Assembly: GCA_003427395.1 (NCBI GenBank)
Contig: BFEA01000012.1
Coordinates: forward strand, 3,126,622 to 3,177,504
Length of the DNA: 50,883 nucleotides
Reading direction: 5' to 3'
From: Chara braunii
Taxonomy: Eukaryota > Plantae > Charophyceae
Every line of letters starts with the position of its first letter. Positions within the stretch are counted from its first letter, which is position 1. Both the position numbers and the translations under genes were made by a program. Of the stretch, positions 9,124 to 50,689 are shown one piece after another. The notes beneath the pieces were generated by a model. That model worked only from the letters and a program-made list of their open reading frames with translations, was not told where the DNA came from and did no database searches.

Positions 9124-9169
9124 GTATTTCAAGTTTCAACCAGTTACCATTACAAAAAAAAAATTGTGG

Positions 9170-26156: not shown

Positions 26157-27269
26157 GCCGCAACGAAGCCCGATGTCAGCGATCTGCATATTAGAGAGTC
26201 TCAGGCAACGGGCGACACAGTGAGTGAGCGAGTATAACGGTTTTTTTTTTTTTTTTTTTTTTTGGCCGTGTGTGTTAGAAATCGTGAGGAGGTAACAAGA
26301 GTACAGGGAGCCTGAGGGGGAGGGGATATGCTGGAGGGGATAAAAGCTGTTAAATTAAAAAGCGGTGAAAGCTTAATCTGACGAGGTTCCAGTCAGAAGC
26401 ACTACGGTAGGCCGTGCGCCAGGAGGAGGAGGAGGAGGAGGAGAGCGATGCCAAGGCCCAAGAGTGTCAAAATAGAAATTTCGTCGCGGGCAGTAGCAAG
26501 CATGGGAGACGGAGGAGTTTTTTTTGAAGCACCGATATAGCTCTCCTTCTTCTGCACGTATCTGAGACTTGTAAATGCGATTTTTAAAGCACTATTATAG
26601 CTCTCCTTCTTCTGCACGTAACTGAGAATCTGAGACTTGTACAGCACTATTATAGCTCTCCTTCTTCTGCACGTAATAACTGAGAATCTGAGACTTGGAC
26701 ATGCGATTTAATGGAGTGAGCTTGAGATGCATGCGCGGAGAGCAGGGTCGGCCGCTGTTTGTGTCACTATTTTCCTTCTTCTTCCGTGTTAGCGAGAGAG
26801 CCTAGGCAGCGAAAACAAAAACGACTATTCATTGTTAGACACTTATAGCACTCCCTATTTATTTTTTGTGTGTCAACATCGATGGTCTTCTTACTACTAC
26901 TGGTACCCAGAAGACCAGATCGCTGAGATCGGGCTTCNNNNNNNNNNNNNNNNNNNNNNNNNNNNNNNNNNNNNNNNNNNNNNNNNNNNNNNNNNNNNNN
27001 NNNNNNNNNNNNNNNNNNNNNNNNNNNNNNNNNNNNNNNNNNNNNNNNNNNNNNNNNNNNNNNNNNNNNNNNNNNNNNNNNNNNNNNNNNNNNNNNNNNN
27101 NNNNNNNNNNNNNNNNNNNNNNNNNNNNNNNNNNNNNNNNNNNNNNNNNNNNNNNNNNNNNNNNNNNNNNNNNNNAAAAAAAAAAAAAAGAGACTGTAAT
27201 TGTTACCCGTTGCTAGTGGGCGAGAGCCAAGCCAGTGTCTTGATATCGACATTATCGAGGTTGGACAGG

Positions 27270-27821
27270 ATGCCTCCCGGTCAATGGTCCAGCAGAAGTG
27301 CGGCATCCAGTTTGCCTCGTCAGAACGGGGTGGTAGGGGTTCGGAGGGGTAGAAGTGCTGCGGTTGTTGTGTTGGAGGACTCAGGTGATGGGGACGCAAA
27401 TGGAATTGGAATTGGAACTGGAATTGCAAATGGAAATGGAAATGGAAAGGACATGAATCGTAGAATGGAGAAAGGGGGGGCTCTGGGGACATCGACAGCG
27501 ACAGGCATGATGAAGGAGTCGTCGGCGAAAAAGAAGGGGGGCGGTTCAGGATCGGGAGCAGGATCCGAGCTAGGGTCGGAACCAGGATCAGAACCGGGAA
27601 CAGGACCAGGAGCAGGACGCCACAAAGGAAGTCCCAGCGGCGTGGCCAAAGGTCTCCCGATGATGTGGCCCACTCAACGCACCGGCTATGTAACACCCAA
27701 GAAGAAAGAGCGAGTGACTCGAGCGAAGAAGAAAGCAATCAGCGGCTCGCGGAGAACTGCACGGAAGACCAATGCGTTTCAGCCTTCCTTTGCCACCCAT
27801 ATTCGGAGAGTCCTCAAACAG
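27270..27821 (+). CDS. H2B: Divergent histone H2B variant, exon with long N-terminal tail and helix alpha1 (…[13 protein letters not shown])
   Basis: Matches H2B 'ESYSIYVYKVLKQ'; donor CAG|gtaagc at 27821/27822. The start (ATG 27270) is uncertain because of the gap at 26938-27175. Confidence 0.8.
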
Positions 27822-29318
27822 GTAAGCCCGCAACAACAAGGACGACTCGGAGAAGGACAAACATAACAAGACGAGAAACAGGAGGAGGAGGACGACGACG
27901 ACGACGAAGAAGAAGAAGAAGAAGAAGAAGAAGAAGAAGAATTGCATTCAATCCATGAGCTGATCCCAAGAATCGAAAATGCGACGGCTGAGCTGACTGG
28001 GGTCAAAGTTAAGGCCCAAGATGAGTACCCAGCACGGATGTGTCGGCGTGCCGATGTACCCAGTCACACTCACACCCGACCGCACAGGCTGTCTACGCAG
28101 CCACTGCTACCCACCAGACAATGAACGGTCCTTACTGCTGGTTGCTACGCTAGCAAGACTTGAATTCCGTATTCCATCCACGAGGCAATCCCAAGAATGG
28201 AACACGTGAGGTTCTGCGCGCGTAACCAAATGGCTAAGCTGACACGGACGCCCACTCCAGCACGGACTTCTCTGAACTTCAAGAAGCAAAAGAAGAAGGA
28301 GAAGAAGAAGAAGAAGAAGAAGAAGAAGAGTGAAAACAGTGGCCAGTTTGGGGAAGATCAAGCGTAGTGTCTGTTCTGATCAGTTTAATAATATAGGATC
28401 TGTGTTCCATCGGGCTATATTTAAAGCAAAAAAAANNNNNNNNNNNNNNNNNNNNNNNNNNNNNNNNNNNNNNNNNNNNNNNNNNNNNNNNNNNNNNNNN
28501 NNNNNNNNNNNNNNNNNGGCCGAACTGCCTTCCGTACAAGCTTTAACCGAAAGTCTTTAGACTTCCATGCATACGACACTCAGTAACCCGCACATTCCCC
28601 AAAGAATAAGGGAGTTGGGAAAATGACCAAGGCGAGTAGGAGTAAGAGGAATTCCGGAAACGATCCGAGGGTCAATCTGTAGGGAAGGTCCGGAGGAAGG
28701 GCATGGTAGATGGGGGAGGGAGCAGATAGAAATTCTGGAATGTGGAAGTCAGGCGTAGTCAGCCGCGGGATGGAAGGCAATAGTTTTGGACAACGAAGTG
28801 GTGTCAAATTGTCAATTGATAAGAGACCTCGATAGGGAAGCTGTGGCGACAGGAAGGTTGAGCTTGCGAGCACATTCACACTAGGATTTTCCCAGATGCA
28901 TCTGACTTACACGTCACGTCAGGTTTAGTCAAAAATGTCCCTGTGTTAGTATGATCATATGGTGATCTCCCTCTTTTTTTTCCTTCCACTCCTTCAAATA
29001 TGGCTCATTAAACTTCATTTGCTTTGCCAGTATGGCCGTTCGGTTACCCCGCTTAAGGTTAGCTAGGCAACGTCAGGTCTGTGAAGCTCTCTCTCTCTCT
29101 CTTTTTTTAATCCTCTCCTTTTTCCACAATGTTCGATTTGCTTCGCAAGGATAGCTGCTCGGTTATACCTGCTTTTGGCTACCTTCTTCCCCCGAACATA
29201 ACGCACCCTGAAATTGAACGTATGCAAGCTATATTTCCGGTCCGGTACAGCCAAGATGAGGGTGCGTTGTGCTCGGGGGAAGACGGTAGCCAATGCCGGG
29301 GGCCCGTGGATGAGTTAT

Positions 29319-29463
29319 AATTGCACTATAGTATGGGCCAAGACACACAGTTTCCAATTGCAGTTTGGGGCATAATGCATACAACCCAGCTTTCTGGCCA
29401 GGTGTAGGGTGCCCGCGGGGCGAAGTGCAATTGCAAACTGGATCTTGCCCCATAGTGCAATTA
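29319..29463. repeat. Small MITE-like inverted repeat in H2B intron 1
   Basis: AATTGCACTAT..GGGCCAAGA..CAGTTT.CAATTGCA versus its reverse complement at 29426-29462. Confidence 0.5.
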
Positions 29464-30159
29464 CGTAGTATAACTCGTTTCTGTGACTCTACTGAAGTTA
29501 CCCCTTTTATAATTGACGACAACTTTGTATCGGCCACTGGGGAAATCATCACCTTCTGCCTGTGAAAGGAAGTGGTGGGCCTGCCCCAGCTATCGGCCTC
29601 GGAAAAAAATAGACTAGAAACGTTTCTACCGTCGGATGAATTTGGCCGCTCCTGTAGTGGCCCGTACATTTCCTAAAATCATAGTGGCTTGTTAACGGGC
29701 ACAACTTTTGGAAGTACTGCAGTGGTTTAAGTTGCGATTCTTGCGAAACAAGTGTGAAGTGTGAGAAAATTTCCGTTTCGGGAAAAAAAAAAAAAAAAAA
29801 AAAAAAAACACCGGCTTCAGAACGGAAAACTTGATAACCCCGGTTTTCCCAAACCAAAAATACTGGGAGGGTCTCTTTCTTTCTCGGTAGTACGTCTCAC
29901 GGTCTCAGTCAAGATTAGAGTTTGAAATTGGCAAAAGGGAACTTATCAGCGATTCAGCAGGGCTGTCAGCCTGCCACTGATCGAGTTAAAAAAAAAACAA
30001 AGGGCAGTTAAAACAGAAGCCGACGGCCCAGAGAGACAGGAGTGGGCCGTGGTGGGCCTGTGTTAAAAAAAAAGCAAAAATTGAGGGAAGTACACATGAT
30101 GGCTGTCAAGAATGGAGTTTTTCCCGCCGACGCTTATATATTGTCTCTAAATGTTGCAG

Positions 30160-30273
30160 GTTCATCCGAATCTATCAATTACGTGTGATGGGATCGACAT
30201 AATGAATGATTTTCTAATTGACATATTTGAGAGAATCGCCGGAGAAGCTGCACTTCTTATCCGTGTTCATAAG
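30160..30273 (+). CDS. H2B: Histone H2B variant, histone-fold exon ([38 protein letters not shown])
   Basis: ttgcag| ... AAG|gtacaa; 114 nt, phase 0/0; matches [38 protein letters not shown]. Confidence 0.93.
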
Positions 30274-31286
30274 GTACAAAATTATTCCGTTTCACTGTGT
30301 GTTTTGCGGCTCCTCACTCTCCTGCCCAGCATTTCCCCTTTGGCTCCCTTCTGTCTGTGCTTGTCACGCGCCTCTGCCTGTGTCTTGAAATGGCCACGGA
30401 TGATTGTCGTATAATCTTGTGTATAAAAATAATCTTGTATATAAAAATTATCTTGTATATAAAAATAATATTGTATTTTTTTTTTTTTTAATTAAATGCT
30501 ATTTCCTTGCCAAAGTTGCCATCTGTAAACCAAAAAATCCTTCTTTTAGTCTTGGGATAATGGGTAGAAAGCACCCAAGCCAAAACCTTTTCGGTTTTGG
30601 AGTTGGAAAAATCCAATTGGAAGAATCCGCTACCGGGTACGAGCGGTGCGATGCGGTAGCGGTGCGCTAAGCGGTGGCGGCGGGGGAGAAGGGCCGCGGC
30701 ATCCGGTCCGTGCTTTGGCACGGACCGGTTGGACGGGAGCACCGAGGAGGCGATGGGCGAGGCGTCGTTTTCGGCACTTTCAAGGACATCTCACTGAAAC
30801 TTGGTCCCTGAGCCAGGCGCAGAGACTGCGTTTCTGGGTCAGACGCAGAGACGACGTTTCTGGGGCCAGATGCAGAAGCTTAGGGGAGTTGACGAATGTC
30901 AGCAGGAAAGAGGGCATCAACGCTTCGCCCTCCACGAAGGGTAATCTGATGGCTGGAATGTCCAAAGAGAGAAGTGGAATTACTCGATAACTCTAAAGGC
31001 GGCTATGACGTGCGCAGCGTCGGCACAGCTCCAGGCGAAGTTCGTGCAGTAAGACTTCCTCCTTGTGATGCAAGGACAGGTATAACACTTCACTCTGCTC
31101 GATTGAGGGGGGAAGGGCGGTGTTGTCCCGTTGTTTATTGAAGGCTTCCTATTAAGTCTAGTCCCTATTGCTAGTTTGTTCCGTATTAGCGATTGTCTCT
31201 ACGATTGATATAGACTGCTAATTTTGATTTTGGTTGCCTTTTCTATTGTCGTTTTTGCTACTTCGTTCGGTATTTAACTAGAAACG

Positions 31287-33886
31287 ATGGGGGATACATC
31301 CACTATGTCGAATACCCTATCCGACCCCGAGAAGGAACGAATTCAAACTCTAATTAACAATTGTTACAACGAAGGAATCATCCCAAAGGATTTACGGCCG
31401 CAAGTAGTTGAGTCCGGGGATGACTTTGACCGAGTTCTGGTCAACCCGGAAGTATATCGGATTCAGCAAAAGTGGCTTATGGAACACGCAGTCACAATTT
31501 CCTTTGGGGGGGATTCGTCTTCATTGCCGGTGAAGGTCAAGGAACGAATTGTGCGAATTCATGAGAATGGTTGGGCAAAGAACGGAAGTATTAATGCCCC
31601 ACCGAAACGCGGAATATTTCGGAATGAAGGATACAATTTAGTCACCTACGTGGCCTCTGCGAAGGAAATCGCCACTTGGCTTCTGAGAAAGAAAGAAGAT
31701 TCAGTGTCTTTGAATGACAAAACATACACGCTTTCTATTAGACCATGGATGTCTGAGGCAGAATTGTTTGACTGGCGTGAGGCTATGCGTTTTAAGTTCT
31801 TCTGGATTCGTTGCCTCCAAGTTCCGATCGGGGTTTTACCTCACCTCGAAGGAGCTGTGGAAGCCTTGTACGGCAAAATTTTGAAATCCTATCCGGTTTT
31901 CAAAGACAAAAAAAAACCCTCCCTCTTGAATGTTCGATTCGATGTGGAATCGTCGGCCCGCTCCCGTTATAAAAGATTCATGGTAGTCGACATGGAGGAA
32001 GGGGGTTTTGTCGAGTTGGAGGTGATCTGTGCTACTACCCCTTGGTGCGAACGTTGTCGCAGGTACTTCCACGAAGAAGCGGACGATGATTGTCCCTTCT
32101 CGACAAAGTCCTCGCGGACAACGTCGAAGGTTCCCCCCAAGGGGAAAGGGAAAACACCTTCAACAGAGGAAACCCATCGAAAGACGAAACCAGGAAAAGC
32201 TACCCAGGCTTGGCGAAGGAAGGAGGGGGGAACGGGATCGGTACTGCAGGATCTCAGAAAGGAAAACGATCCCGAGAACCCTCTTTCAGACGCGGCACCT
32301 CCTGCTAACGTAGGGGATATGCCACGAACCAATCTTACGGGGACAGAGCAGGGCGGTGGGGATCCCGTATGTGGGGCTCAGGGGAAGATCAGATCTCCCA
32401 CCTATAAAGAAGTCTTGTTATCCCCCCCCCCCCACCCACACAAGAGAAAGAACGATTGGAGAAACTCCCGGCTCAACTTGGTGGATTCGAGGAAAGGTCG
32501 ATGGAGGTATCGCAGGAACCCGAAGCGAAGCTCCCGAGCGAGGATCTCGATGCAGAGATGGTAGATGGAAAGGAAACGGACGAAGAGGAGGAGGAGGAAG
32601 AGGAGGAGGAGGAAGAAGAGGAATTTGAAGAAGAGGAGGAAGAGGAGGAAGAGGAGGAGGGCGCAGGGCTGGTAAGAAAGATCTCCTCTCCATCCCCCGG
32701 GCTTTCGCTGGAAACAAGCAAGGCGGCGGATACCTTGACTCACTTGGAAGAACCAGAATCCAGGTGGCTCTTGCCTAATCTGTTTAACGAGAATTCTCAG
32801 GCTCCTAACGCAGGTGATCCCTCACCAGAAGCCAACATGCAGGAGAAGGGTAACGAGGAACCCGAACAGGAGTTCTTCTCCCCAGTTGGTGATCAGGAGC
32901 TAGGGTCAATTACAGCTCTGGCAGAGCCGAACAAAAATAGTTCTGTTCAAAAAAAGAAGAAGAGTTCGAATCTCGCAAAGGGCCAGGAAAATAAGCAGAA
33001 GAAAAATACAATACTTCCAGCAAATTCTGTCTCTCCAGGGGACGCTGCTTCCCCGGCGAAACGCACCCGGATTGACTTGAACACGGGAGCACCTCGTTCT
33101 CAGGAAGAGAAAAGCCCAAGAGAGGAAATTTTGAGAAGCTCCGCAAAGAAAAGGGAAAGGCTAGTGGGATTAAAAGCAGTCAGGCGCTCCCTCTCTCTAG
33201 CAGCTCCTACGAAAACCCTCTCTAGATCTGACAAATCCATAGGCTACCTCCCCCTGTACCTGGTGCCACTGGTCTGTACTCCCGCTAGTTCGGGTGCACA
33301 GATATTGACCCTCGCCACGGAGGACGGTAGTATAAAACTACCAATTGTTCCTATCTATTGCCTCCCATCGGGTGAGGACGTTGTTAGATTATTTAACAAA
33401 CACTTTTTGTTGGATGCAGCTGACACAGGCATTCTACCATACCCGAAAATTTCTTGGCACCTCGTGGAAATGCCAGGGCAAGGGAAAGTGGCCCTATTCC
33501 TGGCTTTCCTGGCTCTTAAATTTAAGCAGGAAAAGGACATTTCCCCAGCCCCTAGTCAGTTTCATTGGGTACACTTAGCTCATTTCGCTACCCCACAGTC
33601 GGAGATGCTGAAAAACATCAAGTTGGCCGACACCTTGACAACTCAAGTAGTAGCGGACTGGTTAATCTACTCGGACAACTCAAGTTTGATTCAGTCACCA
33701 GCATTCAAGGAACAGATTTGCAAAACCGTGACTGAAATTCAAAATAGGACCTCTCCTACTCCTGCTCATCCCAGCGCCGCTGCAGCAGCAGCTGTTGTTG
33801 CTGCTGCTGCATCTGGGATGGACACCGACTCCGACCGAATCCAATTGAATAACGGCAAGGACCCTACTGATGGTCCTTCCCAATAA
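31287..33886 (+). pseudogene. LINE ORF1 (frameshifted near C12 run 32422-32433): CCHC knuckle, poly-E tract, extra C-terminal domain
   Basis: ORFs 31287..32564 and 32456..33886; WCERCRRYFHEEADDDCP. Confidence 0.85.
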
Positions 33887-36800
33887 GGTTAGAATCTTAA
33901 ACTGGAATGTGCGCGGTCTTGGTGACTCCAACAACACCTTCAAAAAAAGTCGCCTCTCCTCCTGGATATACTCGAATAATACCCACATTATCTGTCTGCA
34001 GGAAACCAAACTGGACACGGAAAAAATTATGGAAGCCCAGAGATGGTGGTTGGGCCCACAAGTTTGGTCCCCTGCAGAAGGGTCAAAGGGAGGGGTCGCA
34101 GTCCTTATCAACAAGGATCTGGAAGTGAAAGTCTTGGACAGCTGTGCAGACACAGAAGGCCGGTGGGCTTGGGTGACAATCGCGGTAGAAGATGAGGACT
34201 GGGCCATTATGTCCATCTATGCCCTGGTCGAATACCCAACCCGAGTCGAGTTCTTTGCCAATTTACCAAAATTTATTCCGGATACAGAAAACTTGGTATT
34301 AGCAGGGGATTGGAACTCAGTCCTCTCCCCGGGTCTGGACTCCCCAAGCCCCAAAGCTTTAAGAGCAGACGGTCTACTTTTTTCAGAACTGGTCAACTCT
34401 CAGGGTCTGTTCGATACGTACAGAATGTGGAACCCGGACTCTCCAGGGTATACATGGCATGGACCCAGGCCAGCCCCTCGAGCGCCCCAACCAAAAAAAA
34501 GGTTGGATGTTATCTTTGCACGTGGCTCCCCCTGGGACCGGTGCATTGGGGCAGAGCTGAAGTACGGGTACATGTCGGATCATAACCCGGTGGTTATGAA
34601 TATTATTACAAAAGATGCTATTGATAAATACAAACCACCTTTTAGGCTAAATGTCAAAATTCTGAAGGACCCGGGGATCGCATCCTGGATAGCAGCCCAA
34701 GTTAAGGACTGGGAGAAGGCTAAAGACCTCTTTCCTAGTATAGGTGAATGGGCGGACACAAAAATTGGTATAGTTTAGGCTTCCATGGAGGAATTCTTTA
34801 GGATGAAAGCGGCGGCCCTCTCGTGGAAAGAAAAATCCTTGTTAGCAATTAACGAAGAAGTGGAAAAGTCAATGGGGGAGGATCCTTTCCAGAAATTTTA
34901 TTGGTCAAACAGAAGGACAGCGGCGCAAACTGAGCTTGAGCAGTTGGAAATTAAGCGACAATCCGACTGGCTACAATGGCTGAAGATCAGGGGGATTATA
35001 GGTTATGACCGAATGACAAAGTTAACTTTCCGTTCTCTAATCCTGCGCCAAGCCAAACCCCTCATGAGGGAACTGAATCACCCATTTGCGCTTTCGGGCC
35101 CTCTCGCTACAGAAACCTCTCAAATTTGTTCATATGCTATGGATTATTTTAGAGATATAGTGTCAACCCGTCGGCCTTTGGACACCTTTGAAACAGATTT
35201 AACGCAATTCTCAGGCTTCTGGAATGTGCCCCGCAAGTAAATTTCATGGGCTCAAAGGAATCTACTTGAGGTCCCAATATCTGAGCAAGAGGCATGGCTG
35301 GCAGCTAAACGAATGACATTGGGCAAATGCTCAGGCTCGGATGGTTTGCCGATTGAACTCTTTTTTAGCGCCTGGGATGTGTTTGCTCCTTTTCTGTGTG
35401 AGATTTATAATTCAGTCCTCTCGACGGGCTCGCTTCCCAGAGGCGTAGTTCGAGGGATGATCTCCCTTCTCTACAAAAAAGGCGGTAAAAGGGAAGTTCG
35501 CAACTGGCGACCTATTTCCCTTCTCAACGTGACCAATAAACTCCTTGGGAAAATCCTCGCGATCAGACTAGCTGACCTTCTCCCCTCCCTAGTGGGGGTG
35601 GAGCAGGGAGCCTTTGTAAGGGGCAGATCTATTCATGAAAACATCTTAACAACTATTCAGGCCATGAAAATCATTGGAAAAGAGAGAAGAAACCTAGCCA
35701 TCCTGATGTTAGACATGGAAAAAGCGCACGACAAGGTTGGTTGGGCATTCGTGAACACTACCCTACTACAGCTGGGCTTCGGTCCCTGTTTTTGTACTTG
35801 GATTAAAGCTTTATATGCGAACGCAACAGTCGTAATCGTAGTAAATGAAAAACTCTCTGAAGAATTTCCGTTGACACACTCTCTGAGGAGGCATGGCTGA
35901 CAGCTAAACGAATGGCATTGGGCAAATGCCCAGGCGCGGATGGTTTGCCCATTGAGCTCTTTTTTAGCGTCTGGGATGTGTTTGCTCCTTTTCTGCGTGA
36001 GATTTATAATTCAGTCCTCTCGACGGGCTCGCTTCCCAGAGGCGTAGTTCGAGGGATGATCTCCCTTCTCTACAAAAAAGGCGATAAAAGGGAAGTTCGC
36101 AACTGGCGACCTATTTCCCTTCTCAACGTGACCAATAAACTTCTTGGGAAAATCCTCGCGATCAGACTAGCTGACCTCCTCTCCTCCCTAGTGGGGGTGG
36201 AGCAGGGAGCCTTTGTAAGGGGCAGATCAATTCATGAAAACATCTTAGCAACTATTCAGGCCCTGAAAATCATTGGAAAATAAAGAAGAAACCTAGCCAT
36301 CCTGATGTTAGACATGGAAAAAGCGTACGACAAGGTTGGCTGGGCATTCGTGAACACTACCCTACTACAGTTGGGCTTCGGTCCCTGTTTTTGTACTTGG
36401 ATTAAAGCTTTATATGCGAACGCAACAGTCGCAGTCGTAGTAAATGGAAAACTCTCTGAAAAATTTTCGCTGACACGCTCTCTGAGGCAGGGTTGTTCCC
36501 TGGCCCCATTGGTTTTTGTACTCCAATTTGAAGTCTTATTAGATAACATAAGATCAAACCTCTCGATCGAGGGATTGAGGGCCCTCCCATCGCTCAAATG
36601 AAAGGTGGGGGCGATTGCGGACGATTTGACAGTTGCTTGTGTTAACTCTACGGCTGGCTTGCTTGAACTACGTAGATTAATAGATACATATTGTGAATTG
36701 TCGGAAGCCTCAGTAAACTGGGACAAATCAATTTTTTTCCTCCCCCCCCAATTCAAGTTGAGCGTGGAGTGGGGCCTGCGTCGTATCCCAGCTAATGCCT

Positions 36801-38700
36801 CTGACAGATTTTTGGGAGTGCAGGTTTCCTTTTGAGATTGCTGTGCGGTGCAGGATAACATTCTGGTGGGTAAAGCCACTGCGAGAATAGCAAGTTGGGA
36901 GAGAAGACACACCCTCTCCCTCTTTGGAAGAGCCCTGGTTCTCTCTGCTGCAGCCTTTTCAACGTTATGGTTTCCCATGACAGTGTGCCTATTAGGGGTG
37001 GAGGCGTATCAGGATCAAAAGAGCGGCGACACGGTATTTATGGAAGCCACCAGCATCAGAAGAACATGGGTTTATCCCCAAAGTGGCGTGGGAGGCGATA
37101 GCCAGGCCAAGCAATGACGGAGGCCTGGGGGTCTTAGACCCCCTCAAGCAAAATCTGACACTGCTTGCCAAATGGCCAGTCCAAGCCATGATAGGCGAGG
37201 ACTGCAAAATATGGATGAGGCTGACCGAGTATATCTTGGGGAGCGAAAGGGGTCTGGAGGACCCTTCTAAGATCTGGCTGTGCCTTATGATGCCTTCTTT
37301 CTGCCAACGCCGGCCTCAATCAAGAATCTGGTGCAACATAATGGCTGCATGGAACAAGCTGAAACCTACGGAGTGGAGACCACCACAGACTAAGCAGGAA
37401 TGTCTGAACCAACTACTTTTTGATAATCCTCACATCTGTCAGCCAAACGGTCTTCCGTTTGCAGTCAAGGGTGGGGAGTCCAGCTTTGGTAACTCGTGGA
37501 TCAAAAAAGGCATCATGCAGGTTAAGGATCTGTGGGACCCTGTTACCTCAGACTGGATATCAGAGGACATGCTGAGGAGAAAGCTCCCAAGGATACACAA
37601 TTTGGCTCGCAATTATCAAACAATCTTGGAAGCGGTCCCTTAAGGTTGGACCTACTTGCTCCAGGCTGATTCTGAGAATGTAGCGAACACCTGGGTCATA
37701 TCACCTAACCCAGGAGAGGTGTGGAGGGTCTTGGGGCCGGCCCCGGATCAGGGAATCAGGGTACAGTCGTGGTCCTTTTCCTCCTGCTTGTTATCCACAG
37801 GTCAGCTGCGGAAAATTGGAGAGCAAACAGTGCAACACACCGTTGATCTAGATGAAGTCCGTGTCTTCTATCAAGAAGAGGGTAAAGGGAAAGCCGCCGC
37901 CTCACTGGGGAGAGATGCTGCCTCCTGTCGGGTTGAACCTCTCCTGTTTGGATGGAAGGGGCTCAAATCCAATAACTCCTTTACCCCGCCACTTCAATAC
38001 AACTCTAGAATGGGGGTCGAGTTTCTGCGTGCGCAGTCAAAAATAAAACCGTTTACCCTAGCCCTCAAGAGAGCAGAAAATCAGCAGCTTGAAGGGGTCT
38101 CTAAGCACAACTTGAGAATCCTTTGGACGACCTTGAAGAAGCTACCATCGCAGAAGCAGGCCGCCATTGTCTGGCTTCAGTCCCTTCTGGTAACAGCGAC
38201 TGCAACCTTCCTAGCGACTAAAGGTATGGATGTTTCCACTACCTGTCAACGCTGCAATTGGGGATGGGAAGACCAAGCTCATCTCTGGCTTTTCTGCCCG
38301 TTATTAGACGACTTGCTGGAATGGTGGAAGAGACGGTGGCATTCCCTGTATGAGCAGGAAATACGCTGGATTGATAACTGGTGGCTTACAGGCCTCCCCC
38401 CTCCGGGATTGGGACTGACTTCAGGCACAGGATATGTAGCGCTTTGTAGCCTCGGTGCTTTACTAGAGGTCATCTGGGCGGCACGGAATGCTGAAGTGTT
38501 TAAGGGAGAGACCTTGTCCCTTCCTCAACAGAAAGCTATGATGAAATCTAAGTTAAGGCTAGTCATTACTGCATACTGATCTCTACGTCGAACGCCTGGA
38601 GCTAGGAACATTCTGTGGTTCTGATGCACATGGGGTTATGAAAATAAATGGGCGATTAGAGAGGGAACCCTGTCCTTGTCCCCCTGGCTTCTGGGCTAGG
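33870..38700 (+). pseudogene. LINE ORF2 (APE endonuclease - RT - zf-RVT) with stops, a frameshift and a 599-bp duplication
   Basis: WNVRGL, LQETK, GDWN, SDHNP; NWRPISLLN, DMEKAYD, LRQGCSLAP, IADD; GGLGV; CQRC..EDQAHLWLFCP. Confidence 0.95.
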
Positions 38701-39131
38701 TAGATGAAGCAGGATTATTTGGAAGAATTGGTGGGATGATAGGATGTATGGTTCGAATGGGTCGATTTAGACCCTCATATCTTTTCAGAACTAGTCAATC
38801 TGACACAGAGAGCACAGAGGCGGTAGTCGGAGACTTGTCAGAGAGGGCAGTAACTTGACAGGATATTAGCGATCTGGTTTAACTCGTATTCGGCTAACCA
38901 GCCTGAGAGGTTGTGGTAGGGGGATGTGAATCAGAATTGTTTGACAATCCTAGCCACAGGTTTCTGAGCTTCAAGGTTTACTTTTTTCTTGTGAGGAGTT
39001 AACGTATTGAGAAGAGGCTAATGAGGTCGTGGGACGCTGGACCCGGTTTCCAGCATGGTCTTGATACTTCCGGGTAGAATTGTGAGGTCCCCGGCCTCGT
39101 CCACCTTTTGTGAAATAAAGTGACAACTTCT

Positions 39132-39179
<48 letters not shown>

Positions 39180-39181
39180 TT

Positions 39182-39414
39182 GGTTTTGGGTGCCCAAAGT
39201 TTGGCCGTTTGGTACTACCGGCCTAAAATGTCGTCAGCCTGGGTGAAAGTCACACCCTTTGGCTTGTTTTTAGCCGTTCATGAATTTGGTGCTGTTTTTG
39301 TGCCAGATCCCTGAAACCGCAGGGCCCTGGGAGGGATGCGTGGGCCCGTAGTACCCCACATGGAAAATATTTGGCCAGTAGTACCAAATGGCCCAACTTT
39401 GAGTGCCCAAAACC
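39182..39414. repeat. MITE-like inverted repeat that received the LINE insertion
   Basis: GGTTTTGGGTGCCCAAAGTTTGGCCGTTTGGTACTACCGGCC versus the reverse complement of 39373-39414. Confidence 0.55.
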
Positions 39415-39416
39415 GA

Positions 39417-41750
39417 TTTTTTTTTTTTTTTTTGGAAAGTATAATCTTTTATTGCAAATTAAAGAGTACCGAGGTCGGGGACCTCACAATTCTACCCAGA
39501 GTTATCCTGGCAGCATCAGCCAGTTTAGCTTACGAGCATAGCTCGAATCCTAAACCAACTATAGTTATCTTACTGTTATAACCATTTACTGGAAACCGGG
39601 TCCTGTGTCCCATACCTGTTATGCTACTTTCCAAAAAATTAAATCCACTTGAAGCTCAACCCCAAAGGGGAAAGGATACTGGTTCCAACCAAGTAAAGAA
39701 AATTCCCATTATCTCATCTAGGAGACCAGTATTTAACTATGAAACTCACGAAAACTTTTGAACTTCTGAAATTCGGAAACTCTAAACTCTGAAACCTTGA
39801 AACTCTAAAACACACTAAAGAAGGACACAACGACTGAGCCATACGAACCTAGTACGGTCCTAAAAAGGGTTTACTTTTCTGTGTCATTCTGTGCCACTAT
39901 AGCTATGCGCTATTGGCATAGTATACTGAATTAATAGGGGATAACAACCAATTCCTCACGACACAAGATAGAAATTTCAATCAGCATCTTTCAACAGCCA
40001 TGGAGGGAAGTGGAACATGCCACCAGCTTTAAGGAGTACCAATTGTGTGTTCAGGCCCCAAGTTCTGGAAAACCAGCTGGCAGATTTGGGGCTCCGTTTG
40101 CCCCTGAAACGTCTTCTCCAATCAGCAATGATAGTACGTCTGATTTCAACCTTTACCTTGTTGATAATATCTCTGAGCGACAGATGGCAGCCTCGAAACA
40201 CTTGGTCGTTACGATCCGACCAAATAACACCAAAAATAATTCCCCTGATAACTTGTGGGATGTATCCCCACCCAACTGTTGCAGTCAATCCTGCCCCCAA
40301 AGTCCCTGTTTGAACCCAACCCTCATTCCAGGGAAATACATCTTTAGTGATCTATTTTCAACACTCTCCCACCATTCCCAAACCCGACTAGATAAAGGGC
40401 ATGCATACCACAAATGACTGGTGGTTTCCCAGATCCAATTACATCGCTCACAAGTAGTGGGTATTTCCATCCCTTTAGCGTGTAGCCAGACTGTCGAAGC
40501 TGTAACCAACAGTGATTGCAGTGTCATAATACGAGCATGTTTCTGAGAAGGCAACACCTTTAACTGTTGTACCACCAGGTTTTTCCTATCTTTGGGTTCT
40601 AGGGATTGTTGCTCTCTTCTCTTCAGTACAATGTCCACCGGTTGTTTCTTTCTTTTCTGTCGAAGGAGGTCTACCCCTCGTTTGGTTGAATAGGAATTCA
40701 GACCAATGATTTGAGTCCTTTGGCCAATCCAGCCAACCGAACAAGGGTGAGTTGCCATTTCTGTAAGTGTGATTCACTACTGGGAGACCGAACGTATCTG
40801 CAGCTTCAGTCCGAATCTTTCCAGATTGCATCTTGAACTCTGTCACAACTTGAGTCGTTCCTTCTAGAAAAGGAACTTGTATTTTAGCCTTGAAGGTGAG
40901 TAACCTGGTGTAGGAGGTGGTAGTTGTTTTCTCCCACACTTCCACAGCCTACCCCCCTCCAGCTTCTGGCCATAGCAGATTCCAGTACGTCTGCAGTTGC
41001 TGTCCACCTACAGTTTTCAGCCATCTACTTCGAACTCTGTCCATACAGTATCTGTGACCATCTCTGTGGCACAACATTTTGTATTTCTGCTAAGTGTTAT
41101 TCTACATTTCTAGATATCGGAGTTGGCTTCTCATCTGTGTCTCTGTTTTCCACTCAGTGGACTCTTCATCCCAAAGATAAAGTATACGAAATTGAAGAGT
41201 CCACTCATTGGATTTCAAGTTTCAACCACGTTCCACCCAAGCTCTTCCGAAATTTCCAGTGGAGTCTTGGGCCGAAGAGGGCTGGCCATCAGGACCACAC
41301 AAGAGGGCGTTTTCAAAAATGGTTTGTGTTAGAACTTCCTCCATTGACTCTGGTTGGAGCAGATTGGAGGGCAGAATCTTGGACCAGGCATACAGAATGT
41401 CACTCCAGAAGTGAGATTTTGACCTTTTTCGACTGTATGTCTTCATGAACAGACAATGCCAGACATCAGTTGGATTGATCAAGTTCCATTTCTCACTGAG
41501 TATATACTTAGCAAGCCAGATCCAGGCATATTAATATTCTGCTAGCACAACTTTTATAGGCCATTTTGCCAGTAATGCTATGTTTTGGCGTTTGGGATCT
41601 AGAATACCAAACCCGCCCTCCTCCCTTGGGAATGTAATGGAATCCCAAGTCACTTTTGATAAAAAGCCATCTTCCTCCTCCGCTTCTAGTTTACACAACA
41701 ATCTAGAAGCTCCTCTCTTGATCTTTTTGTAAGCCTGATCTCCCAACCGG
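39417..41750 (-). mobile_element. 5'-truncated L1-like LINE, related to the 30601-39170 family
   Basis: Poly(T) at 39417-39432; 3'UTR motifs shared with 39030-39130; ORF2 fragments EEGGFGILDP, LPSQKHA, CERC..ETTSHLWYACP, IWSDRN. Confidence 0.9.
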
Positions 41751-41754
41751 TGCA

Positions 41755-43335
41755 CTGTGATTCCGTTCAACCTCACTAACGTGCCTGCTATCTTCCAAAC
41801 GATAATAAGTGCTCTCTTCAGGGACCCTCTTGGAGGCTTAGTTTGTTTCCTCGTGAACTTGGACAATATCCTAATCTATCGTTGTACCTTAAGAAGCATC
41901 TCCTGCACCTCCGGGGTGTCCTCCAGCGCATATGTAGCCATGACTTCTCCACCAAGCTCAGTTAGTGTCACTTTAAGTCCATTTCTTAGGACACCAGGTT
42001 TCCGAGCAGGGCCTCCACATGGACGATGTGAAAATCACTACTATCACGCATTGCCAGTAGGCTGTAGCCTTCCGTAATCGTCAAGTAGCTTCGTATTCTC
42101 CTAGGTTTTACATGTTATTATCATTTGTTTATTGAGGGATACGTTAAGTGCTCCTTCCTTTTCTCCACCCTCCTTCAAAAGTAGGAGTTGTTCTATCCGA
42201 GTTGTTTCCCTCATCTACTCTTCGATTTGTCACCCATTCCCCATTTTTTTCCTCCCTCCTCCAGAAATGCTTCCCAAATTATGCCTACTTGTCAAGTTCT
42301 CAACCGCTCCCCCCCCACTGACAGTGAAACCTATCACATATTTTTCAACTATCATGTCGAGGCCCTTACTGGGGAGTGACTTATCGCCTTTTGTTCCCAT
42401 TAGTTGTGTCCGTCCCAGGTAATATATATAATTGATTAACATAAGCTGCTCGATTTAGTTTATGTCGCTTGGTACTAGCACCACTGTTTGCACGGGCAAC
42501 ACTTTACCATTGTTAACAACTCCGTCCATGTGGATTTCCTTAGGAAAGACAAACTTACACCTTAACAGGCACATTGGCGGCGTAAGTTCTTTGAGTCCAT
42601 CATCTTCGTTCATCATATTGGCAATGCGAGGAAATCCAACCGAGTAGCGGACGTCTTGTCGCACCATTCAAACTTATATTACGATGCCATTGAGACCTTT
42701 GTCATTTCGATCATCACTATTGATGATTCGGTGACCAACACGTATCGTATGCACTACCCTCGCTGCCCAGTTTCTGCAACATGTACTCGTGATTACGGTA
42801 CGACAAAACTATTCCTTCATATACCCTAGGCAAGAATGAGCTCCTCTACTAGCATGGCATACGTGGTAGTTCACAACCATGTGTATGTGTCCCCTCCATC
42901 AACCAGCTCCGTATTCAGGCGGTTCTGAGTTTGATGATCAGCAGTCTGCAGACCTACAAATTGAATCGTGTCTTCTGCCACTACGCATTGCTTCATAGAG
43001 CTGAGTTTATCCGGAGCTATTTTCAGGAATATTGCGCTGCCTAGGTATACCCACCTTGCATGACTGTTATTGGTTGTTCTGGATGTTAAGGCAACCTAGA
43101 GGTATTCTAGTGTCGATCATCAATAGGTGTACAATCACTGGTCAACTTCGCCCCCCTATCTCGCGCATCTACTATACTCCTCTCCACTCGTTTTTCTTAT
43201 GATTGTACCGTTGTTGTTCTAATCGTTGTTGGTTGTATATCATCTGGAGGTACTCTAGCCTCTGTCATCAGTAGGTACAAGGCCACCATTCGTCCTCGTA
43301 GCTAGGTGGCCTTCCACGATAGAGCAGTTGATGTA
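41755..43335 (+). mobile_element. Highly decayed Ty3/Gypsy pol fragment (RT-RNase H-integrase)
   Basis: IPFNLTNVPAIFQ..NLDNILIY resembles MPFGLTNAPATFQ..YLDDILIY; downstream FLG and LGF..YY traces and a late xFH motif. The downstream assignments are weak. Confidence 0.7.
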
Positions 43336-44202
43336 GTACCTCAGTGGGTCGAGCTAGGAAGCTGCAAGGGACAGGTCCAGGGTTCAATTTGGAGCGGCCC
43401 TGTGCATTACATAGTACAGATACAACTGGGGTGCAGGCAGGAGGGGCCAGGTAGGCCTACCTGAGTGGATGATCAGATAGTTGGTTACTTGTAGGCTTTG
43501 CTTTGGAGGTGCAGGGCTGCAGGTGGGATGGGGAAGGGGGGTCCGTAGTGGAGCGATTGTCTGCTTGAGACTACTTCCCATTGACATGAAGAAGATGATC
43601 CCAACGTCGAAGAAAAACTCGCTAGTAACTAGGATAGTTGCCAGTTTCTATTTGTATTGTATGTTTTTTCTATATTGTCCGAGAGGGATGGGTTATAATA
43701 CCGTTATATACTCTTTTTGCATGCTAAGATAGTTTAGCTGCATGCTTTTTGCATAATGCCCTTAAGATAGGTTAGCTGCATGCCCTAGAGAGCTTTGGGG
43801 GGCTGTTTGTGGGGGCAGTCTCAGTGGTCATCGGGGGTCGTAACTGGAGCAATGCCGACCTGTTTGTGAAGCAAGGTGGTGCAACTGTGTAACCTAACCT
43901 GAAGGGAGCATGAGGCTTGGAAGAGCTTCGGTTCGTGCTGAAAACAGCCATGTTGGTGGTGGTCGTAGGTGGATTGAATAGGTTTCACGTATCTGATTTG
44001 TGGTTGGGAGGCTTTTTGACACACATATTCTACTGACTTGGTAGAGTCTGAATAGTGGAAAATAGGTTGGTTGTTCTTATGAATGTCTTAGGACTCTAGG
44101 GAATCTTAGCAACCTATCTTAGGCGGTTTTGAAGTTGTTATACTCAGTGATATGTGGCTGTTCGATGCCAGAACGACGCTGGCCGGTGCTGGGGTGTTGC
44201 CC

Positions 44203-46944
44203 TGTGACGCGCAACCTCACGCCCTGTGCTGTCTTTCGTTCGGAGTGCTAGAGGTGCGGAAAAGGGGCCCAAAAAAACAGCAAGATGGGGTGTGCCAAGG
44301 ATTTTTGGAAATTAAGTGTGGGGACACAGACGGAACTGAAATCCCCCGTGTTGGTCCGATGAAGTAAGTCGATCGTTTTTTCGTGCGTCGCAAAATGCGC
44401 GCGGGAGTTCGGCGTGAAAGGAGAGAGAATACAAATTCAGTCCAAAAAGTATTGTCGGACTTCCCACTGTGCTACGGCCCTTCGTTTAGAGCGAAAAGGC
44501 TTCGGCACGCTTCGCGTGTCTCATCTTCGTATTAAGTCCCGACGTCGTTCACCAGTCAGTTCTGAGTCCGACGTGGAGGGCCTCAGTCGTGTGACTCTTT
44601 CTCTGTGTTCGTCTTCACTCCGTACGCGGTAGTGGAAACCCTTGGATTCGTAGCGCTCAAAGCGCCGGCACTCGGTGCATAGAGTGCGAGGCCAGCGGGG
44701 TTCTACTGCCGTCCACGGGATGACGATCAACTCGTTAAATGGCAACAATATCGAGTAAGGTGGAAAGTGTGTATCGATAATAACAAACCCAGCCTCTACG
44801 GACCCTGAACAACGATTTTCCGGAGGGAAGTAATATCGTCCGCCGATTCGTGCGACAGCTTCTCGTACGTCCCACTCGCATACACGTGTCCTTTCCTCGT
44901 CGTAAGGAAAAGGTCGCGTTGATACGGGAGATACGGGAGGCTGACGCCCGATCGAAGGGCGTTTGTCAGACCACATGTCAATCAACTGCAAAAATCATGA
45001 GACGTCATCAAGGAAAAACACCCGCACAACCACCAATCAATTCTTTTCGACACGAGAGAGAGAGAGAGAGAGAACACTCATCAGCTTGATCATGCATGTA
45101 ACTGAGGGACCGACCCGCGACTTAGGTTAGTAAGCCACCACGACGTTGATCCAAGCCGCCTTGTTTCTCGAGGTTGTCCTGTAGATCGGTTGCAAATGCC
45201 GTGCAACATAAGGCAGATGACATGCGCAGTGCATTCAGAACTACAGATCTAAACACTCTTGCATTCTCGAACAAAATCCCGCCGAGTGGTGCGTCTAATC
45301 AACACAACAAGGCAAGTATCTCCATACATATATTCACTGTGGAAGGTGCGAAAATGACAGGAGTACACAGGTCGGAAATCAACCAAGGGAATTGTACACA
45401 CGCATCCACCGTTCACAAGACAAGAGGATCAATTCCTCGACATCCGGGGATTACCCAGGAAACTAATGTAAGAGTTTCGGAAGAAGTTCCTTCACACAAG
45501 AGAGCACACAAATTCATTCCCATTCATGAGAGGGACAAGCATCAAGACACATCGTCATTCAAAGATAGAGGAGAGAGAGAGACGAGGGAGGAATGTTGAG
45601 ATAGGAGATGACAATATTCGAAAAGAGGAAGTTCGGCGTTACCGCCGTACACTCACGCCAGAGATAAAGATCCGCAACAACAAAGGCGCATTCACCGTGA
45701 ATTCCGATATGGTCCCGGGCCAACCACCCACTCAACTCCAATCATTGATCCTCATACCCGCACCGACGATCCCGATCGTCGCGTGCTAACTCCCACCACT
45801 GCGATCGTCACGCCGCCGACGTAAACTCGACGCGGTTCGCCCAGATCCCACAGTCCGTCGTGGCGATCAAGCGCGCAACCGGCCAGCCTATCGTCAGCCC
45901 GATAGGACTTTCCGACTGGCATCAAACACTCTGCCTAGCCACTGCTTCCCGGAAGCTGGCTTGGGAGTCGAGAACGTAAGAGAGATTTGCGGGCGCGTTT
46001 GCGGAATTTATAGTGGTGAGAAGGGGGGCAAGGGAGAGAGAAGGCAGGGGGAAAATCAAAGTGTAAGAAAAGAAGCATGAGGAGAAGACTTGGTGAGGAG
46101 TGCGCTACGGAAGCCATGTTGATCCTTCGGGACTCTGAGCTTCGCCAATCAGATTCGTCGCGCAATAAGCAGATCCTATCGTACCACGCGTTTGATTGGT
46201 GGGCGAGAGTAATCGAAGGATCGACCGGGCTTCCGATTTCACGTTCGGAAGGCGAAAGGAAAAAGGGCGCGAGAAGTAGCGCAAGACGGGTCTAAGATTC
46301 AGATGATCAAGAAAGGGAAATGGGCGCGCAACCAATCAGAGCGGGAGAGAGAGAGGGAAAACAGTTGCGAGAAGGGAGGATGAGAAGGGGGAAGGAAGAA
46401 AGAGTGCGGGAGAGAACGATGCGGGAAACAGAGCGGGGGGGGGGGAGAAGAAAGGTTCGCATGTGTGGCGCCGTCAACAAAAAGAAAAAGAAAAAGGCAC
46501 CGAAACAGTGACAGCTTGCCTATGTCCTAAACCAATTCAAAATTGAAATCACCATATCCGCGCGCGAAAAGGATGACGCGAGAAAAGAAAGTCCTACGCC
46601 TATTTGTATCCTCACAAAATTCCAAGAGTTTTCCCCAACGCGACCGAGAACATTCACACACAAAAAGGACACGTCGAAGTCCGCGTATCCCCGAATTCCC
46701 AATTGCCGGGCCCAATTCCTAGTGCGCTCGCTAAGGCGCGCGTAAATTCCTATGTATTTCCCGAATTGCAAAAGAAAAAGCAGAACCGAAGAATCACAAA
46801 AGCTTCCGGAAGATGGGGCCCCAAAACGCGGCGCCTGAAATCAAGAAAACAAGACGGGGTGCTTGTAGGGTCGGTATGATACAAGAAAAATTCAAACCAA
46901 AGGGGTACGAAAGATAGCCCGGGTTCGGGAAGTAGTTCGTCACA
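44203..46944 (-). mobile_element. 2.74-kb solo LTR-like element
   Basis: Termini TGTGACG...CGTCACA; 4-bp TSD GCCC (44199-44202 / 46945-46948). The empty-site sequence GTGTTGCCCTGTAACC recurs near 47074. Orientation is inferred from the TATA box. Confidence 0.75.
46006..46340 (-). promoter_or_regulatory. Putative LTR promoter: TATAAAT with upstream CCAAT boxes
   Basis: ATTTATA at 46006-46012 (TATAAAT on minus); CCAATCAG/GATTGG near 46145, 46194 and 46332. Confidence 0.4.
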
Positions 46945-47434
46945 GCCCTGTAACCTGCTGATGCAGGAGCGCGAGGCCTGGTAGAGAGATCTGGGGATGC
47001 TTTGGGGTGGGCATCCTGAGCGACAGCCAAGGTTTGCTGGTGGGACGACGCTGGTCGGAGCTGGGGTGAGTTGTGTTGCCCTGTAACCCAGCAGGGTGGG
47101 GGCGTGAGGCCTGGAAAAGCTCAGCAGGGAGTAAGACTGTGTTGGGAAGTCTTAGAAGGGCTTGTTAGGGATCCTGAGGGTTCTGAGCATTCGTAGGACC
47201 TCTGTGGCAGCCTATTGCATGAGTAGTTTCTTAATAGGTCATTAGATATTCATGATCTTCCCCATGCTTTCGGAATCATTATCGTGCTCACAGACTGTTC
47301 TTACCCGTAGTCGGGTATTGGCTCCGGTATCTCAAATGATCTCAAATGTTCTCAAAGATCTGTACAATTCGATATGGGACGCTGGGCCCGGTTCCCAGCA
47401 CGTGCTGCTCCCCACGAATAGACTGGAGCACGTG

Positions 47435-47465
<31 letters not shown>

Positions 47466-47797
47466 GGTTAGCTGCATGCCCAGTTTCCCTTGTTTCTTTT
47501 TCCGGGGGGGGTGTTTTTTTTTCCTGTTAGTTGAATCATTGAAAAAGATAACGTTGTTCTTGGATGATCAGACCAGCAGGCCCTGGTTTGGCCACTTCTG
47601 GCTCTCAATCACACTAAAGCCCTAAGGCCCTACACCAAAGCTGTGTGAAATGGTTCCAGTCCCCTTCTTTGGTTCCCGGGTTGTTTGCAACTCCCGGCCG
47701 GATTTGCATCTCACAAAACGGATGTTCTTTCTTTCTTCCCCCATAATTCCTTAGCAAGCAAATGGACAAACCCATGACTGAAGAATAAAGGAACAGA

Positions 47798-48000
47798 CTC
47801 CCGGTTTCTGGTTTCAGTTAGTCAGAGGAATGGGATGCTGGTCCCGGTTTCCAGCACAGTGTTTTTTCTCTGATTGTCTCATGCTCAGGTCTTTGTCTCA
47901 AACTTTCACCCACGAAGTTCATAAGGGACGCTGAGCCCAGTTCTCAGCACGTGATGCTCCCNACGAATAGATTGGAGCCTGAGTTTAAAAAAAAAAAAAA
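47798..48000 (+). mobile_element. ~200-bp LINE 3'-end insertion
   Basis: 11-bp TSD AAAGGAACAGA (47787-47797 / 48001-48011), two copies of the GGGAC-hairpin motif, poly(A). Confidence 0.75.
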
Positions 48001-48765
48001 AAAGGAACAGATCTGTGTAACCGAGGAGTGCGTACGGCCATGTCGCTCTGCTTTTTTTTTTTGTTTGTTTGTTTTGTTTTTAGTTTTTCACTGCCATGTC
48101 GCTCTGCTGAGAACATGTCTGTTCAGTTTCCTGGGAAGTTCTAAAGGATTGAAGGAATGACTACCTTCTTCCCCCAAATACAACGTATGGTCATTTTAGC
48201 TGTATCTAGACTGAAAGATGCCTCAAATGCAGCTATAATGACCGTACGTTGTATTCGGGGGAAGAAGGTTCCGAAATGGAACACCAGTACTTTGTGTTTC
48301 TCTTCATACCCCCTGCTCATCTCCCTGCCACTGCCTATTCTAGCTAAAACACAAAGAGATTTGAAGACACCAGGCTGGAAACCGGGTCCAGTGTCCCATA
48401 GGCCATAGACCACTAGTATCAAGAAAAGGCTGGAAGCCGGGCCCACCAGGCTCGGGCTACCTAACCCAGTGGCCCTGGCTGGCCCCGGGCCCTCCCAGCA
48501 GTAGGCATTCTCAGGCACAAATATAGATGGAGTGGCCAGCAGTAGGCTTACTAGGGGAGGCTGCTTATATCACCCCCCCTAGTAGGCGCGCCATGGCCTC
48601 GTTTCAAAAAAAGAAAAAAACAAAGTGCTTCTCTTCAAAGTTCATACTAAGTTCATAGGCATTATTTGTTTTGCGGCTTTTGCCAGATTGCAGTAAAGAA
48701 ACAATGTGGGAAATATGACTAATGTTGCCCCCCTTGGTTGGCGCATGGATGTGTTTTGGCCACAG

Positions 48766-48882
48766 AGGTGCACCCTCACTTGCCGCGAGATCATGGCTGC
48801 TGTGCAACTTGTCCTCGGGGGAGAGCTTTCCAAGCATGCGATCCACCTGGCAACAGAGGTTCTCACCTTATTCAGTCAATGA
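48766..48882 (+). CDS. H2B: Histone H2B variant, last exon ([38 protein letters not shown])
   Basis: ccacag acceptor, phase 0; matches [38 protein letters not shown]. Absent from the ORF track. Confidence 0.9.
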   Translation, partial: [38 protein letters not shown]

Positions 48883-48931
48883 TTGTCCAAAGTTGAAAAC
48901 TGATATCCTTCTGCATTTGAGAAGCCATCAT

Positions 48932-48993
<62 letters not shown>

Positions 48994-50163: not shown

Positions 50164-50245
50164 TCCTTTGGGACAGCTGTGAAAATTGGAAGGATAGCAC
50201 GGACCCTTTGCGAAGATCACACACATGAAAGGATGGATGTCCAAT
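50164..50245 (+). pseudogene. U6: Diverged U6-derived sequence lacking the ACAGAGA box
   Basis: TCCTTTGGGACA..AAAATTGGAA.GATAGCA.GGACCCT..GCGAAGAT.ACAC.CAT.AA..GTCCAAT is collinear with plant U6. Confidence 0.6.
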
Positions 50246-50360
50246 CTGGGTAGCATCCTGTACGCATATGCAGGGAGTACAGTGTACGTACTCCGGACTA
50301 CAGGTACTAACATTGGAGTACACGCACTTGCTGAAAATCGCGTGCACGCATACAAAAACT

Positions 50361-50540
50361 CCTCCTGATGAGTCGGTGAAACTCCGACGAAACAGTTTAT
50401 CACAGCCCCTCGTTTGTTGTCCTCTTCTCCTCTCTGCCTAAAGGTTGAGCGCCGGCTGCCCCCATCCCCGTGTGTCACAAGGGCCCACTTGCACGCAGCC
50501 AAAAGGCAAAGAGCTAAAGAAAAGGAGGAGGAAACCAAAG
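50361..50540 (+). mobile_element. Second copy of the hammerhead-bearing repeat (5'-truncated ribozyme)
   Basis: CCTCCTGATGAGTCGGTGAAACTCCGACGAAACAGTTT plus downstream similarity to 61-105 and 281-375; lacks the 5' strands of stems I and III. Confidence 0.85.
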
Positions 50541-50689
50541 CTCACAGAGGCAAGAGAAAGAGAAAGGGATTCAGTCAAAGAAAGGACAAGGGAAGAGGAA
50601 GGCCTATCAGTCAAACAAAGCAAATGACACATCCCATCGTTTTTTGAACTTTTTTCTTTTCTTCGGGAATTTGTTCTTTTTTTCTTTCC

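Follow-up and report, generated by a model that had tools for sequence, protein, structure and literature searches.

A very divergent, intron-split histone H2B gene in the stonewort Chara braunii

Does a histone gene that departs from canonical H2B at many conserved positions, and that is broken up by long introns, still encode a working component of the nucleosome? The question is raised by a locus of the charophyte alga Chara braunii (Charophyceae), in which three coding exons of an H2B-like gene are spread over 21.6 kb. The locus lies on contig BFEA01000012.1 of the GenBank assembly GCA_003427395.1, within a stretch of 50,883 nucleotides (nt) (positions 3,126,622 to 3,177,504 of the forward strand) that was analyzed in full and is hereinafter called the window; all coordinates below are counted from its first letter. 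In a preliminary description derived from the sequence alone, the gene was proposed to encode a functional, replication-independent and lineage-specific H2B variant, possibly specific to gametes. The evidence presented here indicates that this is probably a single-copy, three-exon, spliced and polyadenylated gene encoding a functional, very divergent H2B variant of 260 amino acids (aa).

Contrary to what the preliminary description implied, the gene is not new: it is annotated at NCBI and ORCAE and is part of the data of a published phylogeny of plant H2Bs, where the protein is listed in the S1 data as Cbr8606 / CHBRA15g00560 (Jiang et al. 2020, PLoS Genet, PMC7410336). A search with exon 1 retrieved one protein, the hypothetical protein CBR_g8606 [Chara braunii] (260 aa, 100% identical, annotated with PF00125), which equals the translations of the three exons piece by piece. 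Neither CHBRA15g00560 nor CBR_g8606 is named in any paper text of the literature searched, a body that does not include the Chara genome paper. The present analysis adds transcript support for the splice model, a residue-level description of the protein, and the lack of close relatives in very large protein collections.

All three exons are encoded on the plus strand in phase 0. Exon 1 (27270-27821; 184 codons, equal to the first 184 residues of CBR_g8606) encodes about 140 aa of disordered, Gly/Ser-rich tail, a basic segment at residues 141-166 and the beginning of helix α1; exon 2 (30160-30273; 38 codons, with CGTGTTCATAAG as its last letters) completes α1 and adds loop L1 and helix α2; and exon 3 (48766-48882; 38 codons followed by TGA; residues 223-260 of CBR_g8606) encodes loop L2, helix α3 and the αC helix, for a joint coding length of 260 aa. 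Intron 1 (27822-30159, GT..AG) measures 2338 nt, an estimate that takes in an assembly gap of 82 N of estimated length, and intron 2 (30274-48765), which begins with gtacaa, ends with ccacag and contains a single N at 47962, measures 18,492 nt. The donors are CAG/gtaagc and AAG/gtacaa, and the acceptors are ttgcag/G and ccacag/A. In human H2B numbering, the two introns fall behind Q47 and K85, respectively. Translation and reading of the exon borders thus confirm three phase-0 exons with an intact frame and GT..AG splice sites, as well as the introns of 2.3 kb and 18.5 kb given in the preliminary description, and the substituted protein strings quoted there are present as written.

Expression of the gene was addressed by mapping the RNA of four runs onto positions 27176-30400 (3,225 letters, including 127 nt of intron 2). 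Splicing of intron 1 (27818/27821 to 30157/30160) is directly documented: the GT..AG joint 27821/30160 is carried by contigs of runs X1, X3 and X13, which come from three different studies, and also by one raw read of X18, an oligo-dT RNA library. The first mate of this read lies on the minus strand, which in the usual stranded protocol corresponds to RNA of the plus strand. The assembly gap in intron 1 (28436-28517) lies wholly within the intron and touches no codon; since 27821 and 30160 are joined in the RNA contigs, the flanks of the gap are transcribed as a single unit, and the reading frame does not rest on it. The contigs of X1, X3 and X13 cease to match the mapped region exactly at 30273 and then continue for 193, 138 and 193 non-intron letters, respectively. 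An overhang of 193 letters matches exon 3 (117 nt) and 76 nt beyond it; on this count the contig would end at 48958, inside a (TC)n run; assemblies usually break at runs of this kind. We infer that the exon 2 donor at 30273 joins 48766 and, from the same 193-letter overhangs, that the 3′ untranslated region (UTR) starts with 48883-48958 on the plus strand, where it enters a (TC)n/(TG)n microsatellite. The claim of an intron-containing, transcribed H2B variant is accordingly borne out by spliced contigs from three studies and an oligo-dT read; of the joints in the predicted transcript, that from 27821 to 30160 is seen and that from 30273 to 48766 is deduced from the contig overhangs. An exact look-up of the CBR_g8606 protein, made for a contig proving the join of exons 2 and 3, found nothing on record.

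Exon 1 is present in 17 of the 21 contig runs listed (5 of 7 studies), a breadth that fits expression in ordinary whole-plant samples at least as well as it fits gamete specificity; thalli of C. braunii, however, carry gametangia. Compared with the assembly, the contig of X3 (a 2023 study) shows T>A at 27241 in the 5′ UTR, A>C at 27448 (K60T, at the edge of a tail repeat) and two further differences, which points to a second strain or allele in which the gene is still in frame. With respect to the proposed replication independence, the traits associated with replacement variants are found here, namely two introns, a splice junction read in an oligo-dT library, and no match to the histone 3′ stem-loop (Histone3, RF00032) in positions 48700-50883 at E up to 1 (Rfam scan). 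Given that canonical histone mRNAs of land plants are also polyadenylated, the combination of introns, polyadenylation and missing stem-loop discriminates weakly.

The protein belongs to H2B by fold. Taken alone, exons 2 and 3 match solved H2B chains, and only H2B chains, in the PDB (E 1e-7 to 3e-6 and 4e-6 to 1e-5, respectively), and the two matches are colinear, covering residues 18-53 and then 56-91 of 8grq_D. For exon 2 alone, PF00125 scores below the threshold (15.9 vs 26.4 bits); in the full-length protein the domain is annotated. Over its C-terminal 88 aa, the protein aligns with no gap to the α1-α2-α3-αC portion of 28 diverse H2Bs, which, together with the separate matches of exons 2 and 3 to H2B chains, goes far beyond chance and upholds the earlier claim of a complete, gap-free H2B fold with an αC helix. 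In the AlphaFold model, which took in only residues 138-172 of the tail, the predicted local distance difference test (pLDDT) score is 85-92 over α1, α2, α3 and αC. The three histone-fold helices are predicted at protein residues 174-185, 193-220 and 228-238 (37-48, 56-83 and 91-101 of the model) and are followed by an H2B-type αC helix at residues 241-259 (104-122 of the model). The best 50 Foldseek matches to this model are all nucleosomal H2B chains, with root-mean-square deviations of 1.0-1.4 Å over 86-89 aligned positions.

Within this fold the sequence has changed extensively. It is 49% identical to the consensus of the 28 other H2Bs, which themselves are 69-93% identical to it. In human H2B numbering (protein residue minus 137), tyrosines are replaced in Y40H, Y42R and Y83V, acidic residues are gained in K57D, G60D and S64D, and further changes are Q95M, R99Q, P103G and K116E. 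The lysine that is the ubiquitylation site of H2B is replaced (K120L, L257 of the protein); in the acidic patch, E113 is likewise replaced by leucine (L250), and E105 is kept as E242. Three serines are changed to cysteine (S56C, S87C and S91C, corresponding to C193, C224 and C228); of the 28 other H2Bs, 27 have no cysteine in the fold and one has a single one. The charge of the fold is balanced, with 9 K+R against 9 D+E and an isoelectric point of 6.9, vs 9.2-10.2 in the other H2Bs. The residues that are kept include E76, the K-R-x-T of loop L2, R92-E93 (REI) and G104-E105-L106-x-K108-H109-A110. Substitutions at hydrophobic positions are in many cases conservative (M59I, V111I, A117V and V118L), and most of the changes in charge or polarity fall at polar or charged positions. 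The lost K120 and E113 mark the protein as a variant and do not exclude it from the fold family.

No close relative of the protein was found. Word-index searches queried with exon 1, with the full-length protein or with just its fold region, and an HMMER search run exhaustively over 1.84 billion representatives, each yielded no relative of more than 55% identity, in agreement with the lineage-specific appearance noted earlier. Among the HMMER matches listed, the top ones examined are H2B-like, with 30-52% identity, and a scan of metagenome DNA identified one locus with 48% identity. Two proteins from short metagenome contigs, P0026 and P0152, share a few of the derived states and are only 42-43% identical to the Chara protein. 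Since there is no orthologue above 55% identity, the ratio of nonsynonymous to synonymous substitutions cannot be computed.

Several of these observations, along with others, weigh against a working variant. The joint of exons 2 and 3 (30273 to 48766) was not observed directly; expression in the raw-read run is very low, with few reads in the 6% of the run that was covered; the searches described above found no orthologue in which conservation between species could be seen; of the 54 columns with at least 90% conservation among other H2Bs, 21 are changed, including Y83V at the H4 interface and P103G; the support for the protein comes from the gene and its RNA; and the public models disagree on the N-terminus (260 vs 267 aa), with the promoter falling into an assembly gap. 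The changes at the conserved columns could signify decay, and the locus could then be a transcribed but degenerating H2B duplicate, the frame of which is open by luck and the product of which does no work in chromatin. The low identity to the consensus, the lack of an orthologue in the searches, the scarcity of reads in the raw RNA run and a tail made of slippage-prone in-frame repeats would all be in line with such a fate. However, the frame of 260 codons is intact and the four splice sites are good. In a simulation of neutral decay, 260 stop-free codons survived in 0.3% of the trials at 0.3 substitutions per site and in fewer at higher divergence, and this simulation counts substitutions only, so that insertions and deletions (indels) would add further loss. 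Moreover, the 88-residue fold has no indel, its hydrophobic changes are often conservative, the H2B fold is confidently predicted by AlphaFold, and the spliced transcript recurs in three independent studies. The intact frame, the conserved hydrophobic core and the confident fold together argue for a working protein, and frame and fold both appear constrained. A decaying duplicate therefore appears unlikely, and a functional variant is preferred.

The N-terminal tail (residues 1-166) consists of 20% Gly and 11% Ser, has a grand average of hydropathy of -0.81, yields no Pfam match, and ends in the basic stretch at 141-166, in which 12 of the 26 residues are K or R and a single TPKK motif occurs. 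In the part that was modelled, pLDDT is below 50 up to about residue 163. In-frame tandem repeats on the plus strand, of period 6 at 27398-27448 and of period 12 at 27547-27618, yield the NGIGIGTGIANGNGNG and GSGAGSELGSEPGSEPGTGPGAG runs of the region 27398-27618. A tail of this kind, which is repeat-derived and lacks both a database match and protein-level support, might not be translated at all; translation would then begin at the internal M131/M132, ahead of the basic stretch, and produce an H2B of ordinary size. The conflict between the two public models over the N-terminus is also compatible with this option: the ORCAE model CHBRA15g00560 has 267 aa, with six extra N-terminal residues compared to the 260 aa at NCBI, and opens with MWNLLR ahead of MPPG, where the genome reads ...LSRLDR, so that it requires an upstream exon spliced at the ag of 27267-27268. 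The RNA contigs, unlike this 5′ structure, are colinear with the genome back to 27180, and the conflict reflects either an alternative 5′ exon or an error in one of the models. The contigs of X3 and X1, which start at 27180 and 27214, respectively, cover exon 1 continuously and define the portion of the 5′ UTR that is seen (27180-27269, plus strand). On both contigs the first ATG is that at 27270; it has an A at position -3 and is preceded by an in-frame TAA at 27198-27200, with no earlier ATG. The colinearity of the contigs, the first ATG and the upstream stop place the long tail within the reading frame of the mRNA. Furthermore, the second divergent H2B of Chara, Cbr32230, is also long-tailed (about 160 aa). 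An internal start is thus quite improbable, and the functional variant is best regarded as a long-tailed protein.

Compared to canonical H2B, such as Cbr45361 of Chara (126 aa) and the chains in the PDB, the protein has the same α1-L1-α2-L2-α3-αC order without an indel, and 40 of the 88 fold residues are identical to the canonical Chara protein, as counted by hand from an alignment by eye. It differs in that introns spread the gene over 21.6 kb, the tail has about 166 aa rather than about 35, the fold is neutral and contains three cysteines, and K120, E113, K116, R99, Y83 and P103 are all replaced. A resemblance in design is seen with Cbr32230 / CHBRA03g01060, also of Chara (S1 data, PMC7410336), which shares the long tail, R99Q (AVQL), KR-x-TL and HP-x-L. 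Fold identity between the two, again counted by hand and by eye, is about 39 of 88 residues (~44%); Cbr32230 keeps the lysine equivalent to K120 (VIKF), and its gene model shows a long extension at the C-terminus.

Among the plant variants, H2B.S is by definition confined to flowering plants, and sequences of streptophyte algae were left out of it for want of the conserved substitutions; in the published tree, divergent sequences from streptophyte algae are placed as a grade at the base of H2B.S (Jiang et al. 2020, PMC7410336). H2B.8, too, is described as restricted to flowering plants; the sperm chromatin of angiosperms is condensed through phase separation by a 93-aa insert in the disordered tail of H2B.8 (Buttress et al. 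2022, PMC9668745). Like H2B.S and the H2B.8 of Arabidopsis, the Chara protein combines a highly divergent core with a greatly expanded disordered N-terminal tail, and with the Capsella orthologue of H2B.8 it shares HP-x-L, KR-x-TL, GELS-x-HA and the loss of the K120 lysine. Unlike H2B.S, it has no KVVxETV motif in the tail, and its C-terminus, which ends in LFSQ, is shorter than that of canonical H2B and is not extended. The charophyte host, the missing KVVxETV motif and the unextended C-terminus lead us to reject membership in H2B.S/H2B.8. The states common to H2B.8 and the Chara gene may be due to convergence or to long-branch attraction.

Lineage-restricted, fast-evolving H2B variants are also linked to the remodelling of chromatin in male gametes in animals (TH2B/H2B.1, H2B.W and subH2B/H2B.L) and in lily (the male-gamete H2B), and some germline H2B variants contain introns and are polyadenylated. 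The animal germline variants and the lily protein are also named in the plant H2B study (Jiang et al. 2020, PMC7410336). Beyond the H2B fold, the Chara protein has no sequence kinship with them.

The locus is rich in repeats, which raises the alternative that the histone gene is carried by a transposon. Besides (GAA)n/(AAG)n microsatellites, intron 1 contains an expressed, dispersed high-copy repeat (about 29120-29767). RNA contigs cover this repeat to a depth of thousands (up to about 22,000), with reads from either strand, and the abundance of variants and loose ends indicates that the genome has many copies of it; an open reading frame (ORF) of 146 aa on the minus strand (29229-29669) lies within this repeat. 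One contig of X1 connects 27193 to the repeat at 29179 via 25 foreign letters. Intron 2 harbors a degenerate retroelement (31287-38579, plus strand) that resembles a long interspersed nuclear element (LINE), has the orientation of the gene and comprises about eight ORFs. Pfam domains identify in it an Exo_endo_phos endonuclease (33870-34778), an RVT_1 reverse transcriptase (35313-35900) and a zf-RVT (37656-38579), all on the plus strand, and its reverse-transcriptase region contains a 300-nt direct repeat (35289-35588 / 35888-36187, 96% identical). Similar LINE-like fragments are located at 5657-7084 (plus strand) and 19525-20388 (minus strand). The LINE, however, sits inside intron 2, is spliced out and does not enclose the exons. 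Each H2B part is present in a single copy in the window (tblastn), and RNA contigs cover the exons to a depth of 16-21 and the intron 1 repeat to one of thousands, so that the H2B gene is low-copy. In addition, only one protein of this kind, with no family of paralogues, was found in the databases searched. On grounds of copy number and anatomy, we reject a transposon-borne histone, which is hardly credible here, in favor of an H2B gene with repeats in its introns.

Upstream of the gene, a second assembly gap (26938-27175), in which the promoter is hidden, ends 94 nt before the ATG. A run of 14 A at 27176-27189 abuts the 3′ edge of this gap, just ahead of the first transcript base seen, and may represent the tail of a retroelement that the gap conceals. 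Elsewhere in the window, a U6 spliceosomal small nuclear RNA gene was identified at 9165-9281 on the plus strand (65.2 bits vs a gathering score of 44, E 2.6e-14). Two weak Rfam matches, both on the plus strand, lie beyond exon 3: a type III hammerhead at 50356-50398 (23.9 vs a gathering score of 48.5 bits) and MIR408 at 50501-50719 (24.6 vs 64 bits), the latter probably a chance match.

If the functional variant is produced as predicted, it would pair with H2A through the normal handshake fold, enter nucleosomes and alter their properties. The positive charge lost through K57D, S64D, R99Q, K116E and K120L would weaken contacts with DNA and with other histones and produce a labile particle; a deficit of four or five basic residues near L1, α3 and αC, together with Y83V at the end of α2 that faces H4, would likewise be expected to make the particle less stable. 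Because K120 is L257, the usual, transcription-linked monoubiquitylation of H2B is impossible, and because E113 is L250, the acidic patch is altered; with one of the two H2B glutamates of the patch now a leucine, the docking of patch readers and of neighboring H4 tails could be changed. C193, C224 and C228 could permit redox cross-links between nucleosomes. The disordered tail of about 140 aa, with its basic stretch, could bridge or condense chromatin, as shown for the tail of angiosperm H2B.8, which offers the nearest functional analogy.

One might guess at a role in a stage of chromatin compaction or histone replacement, in the spermatozoid or in the dormant oospore. It is tentatively conceivable, although we consider it doubtful, that Chara possesses its own long-tailed, neutral, cysteine-bearing type of H2B that is independent of that in flowering plants, perhaps groups with CHBRA03g01060 and acts at such a compaction stage. 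Under this proposal, the protein might be a labile "transition" histone easing the exchange of histones for protamines in the motile spermatozoid, or alternatively a histone that condenses the chromatin of the dormant oospore by means of its tail, in convergence with the action of H2B.8/H2B.S in sperm and dry seeds.

Recognized variants of H2B are few, and the best understood of those in plants, H2B.8/H2B.S, is regarded as an innovation of the flowering plants that is tied to immotile sperm and dry seeds. A stonewort gene of comparable design, with a divergent core, no K120 and a long tail, provides a test of whether this design arose repeatedly. It also poses a second question, namely what role such a design plays in an organism in which sperm are motile and packed with protamines and zygotes are dormant. 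A link to the chromatin of sperm or oospores, if true, would raise the importance of the gene.

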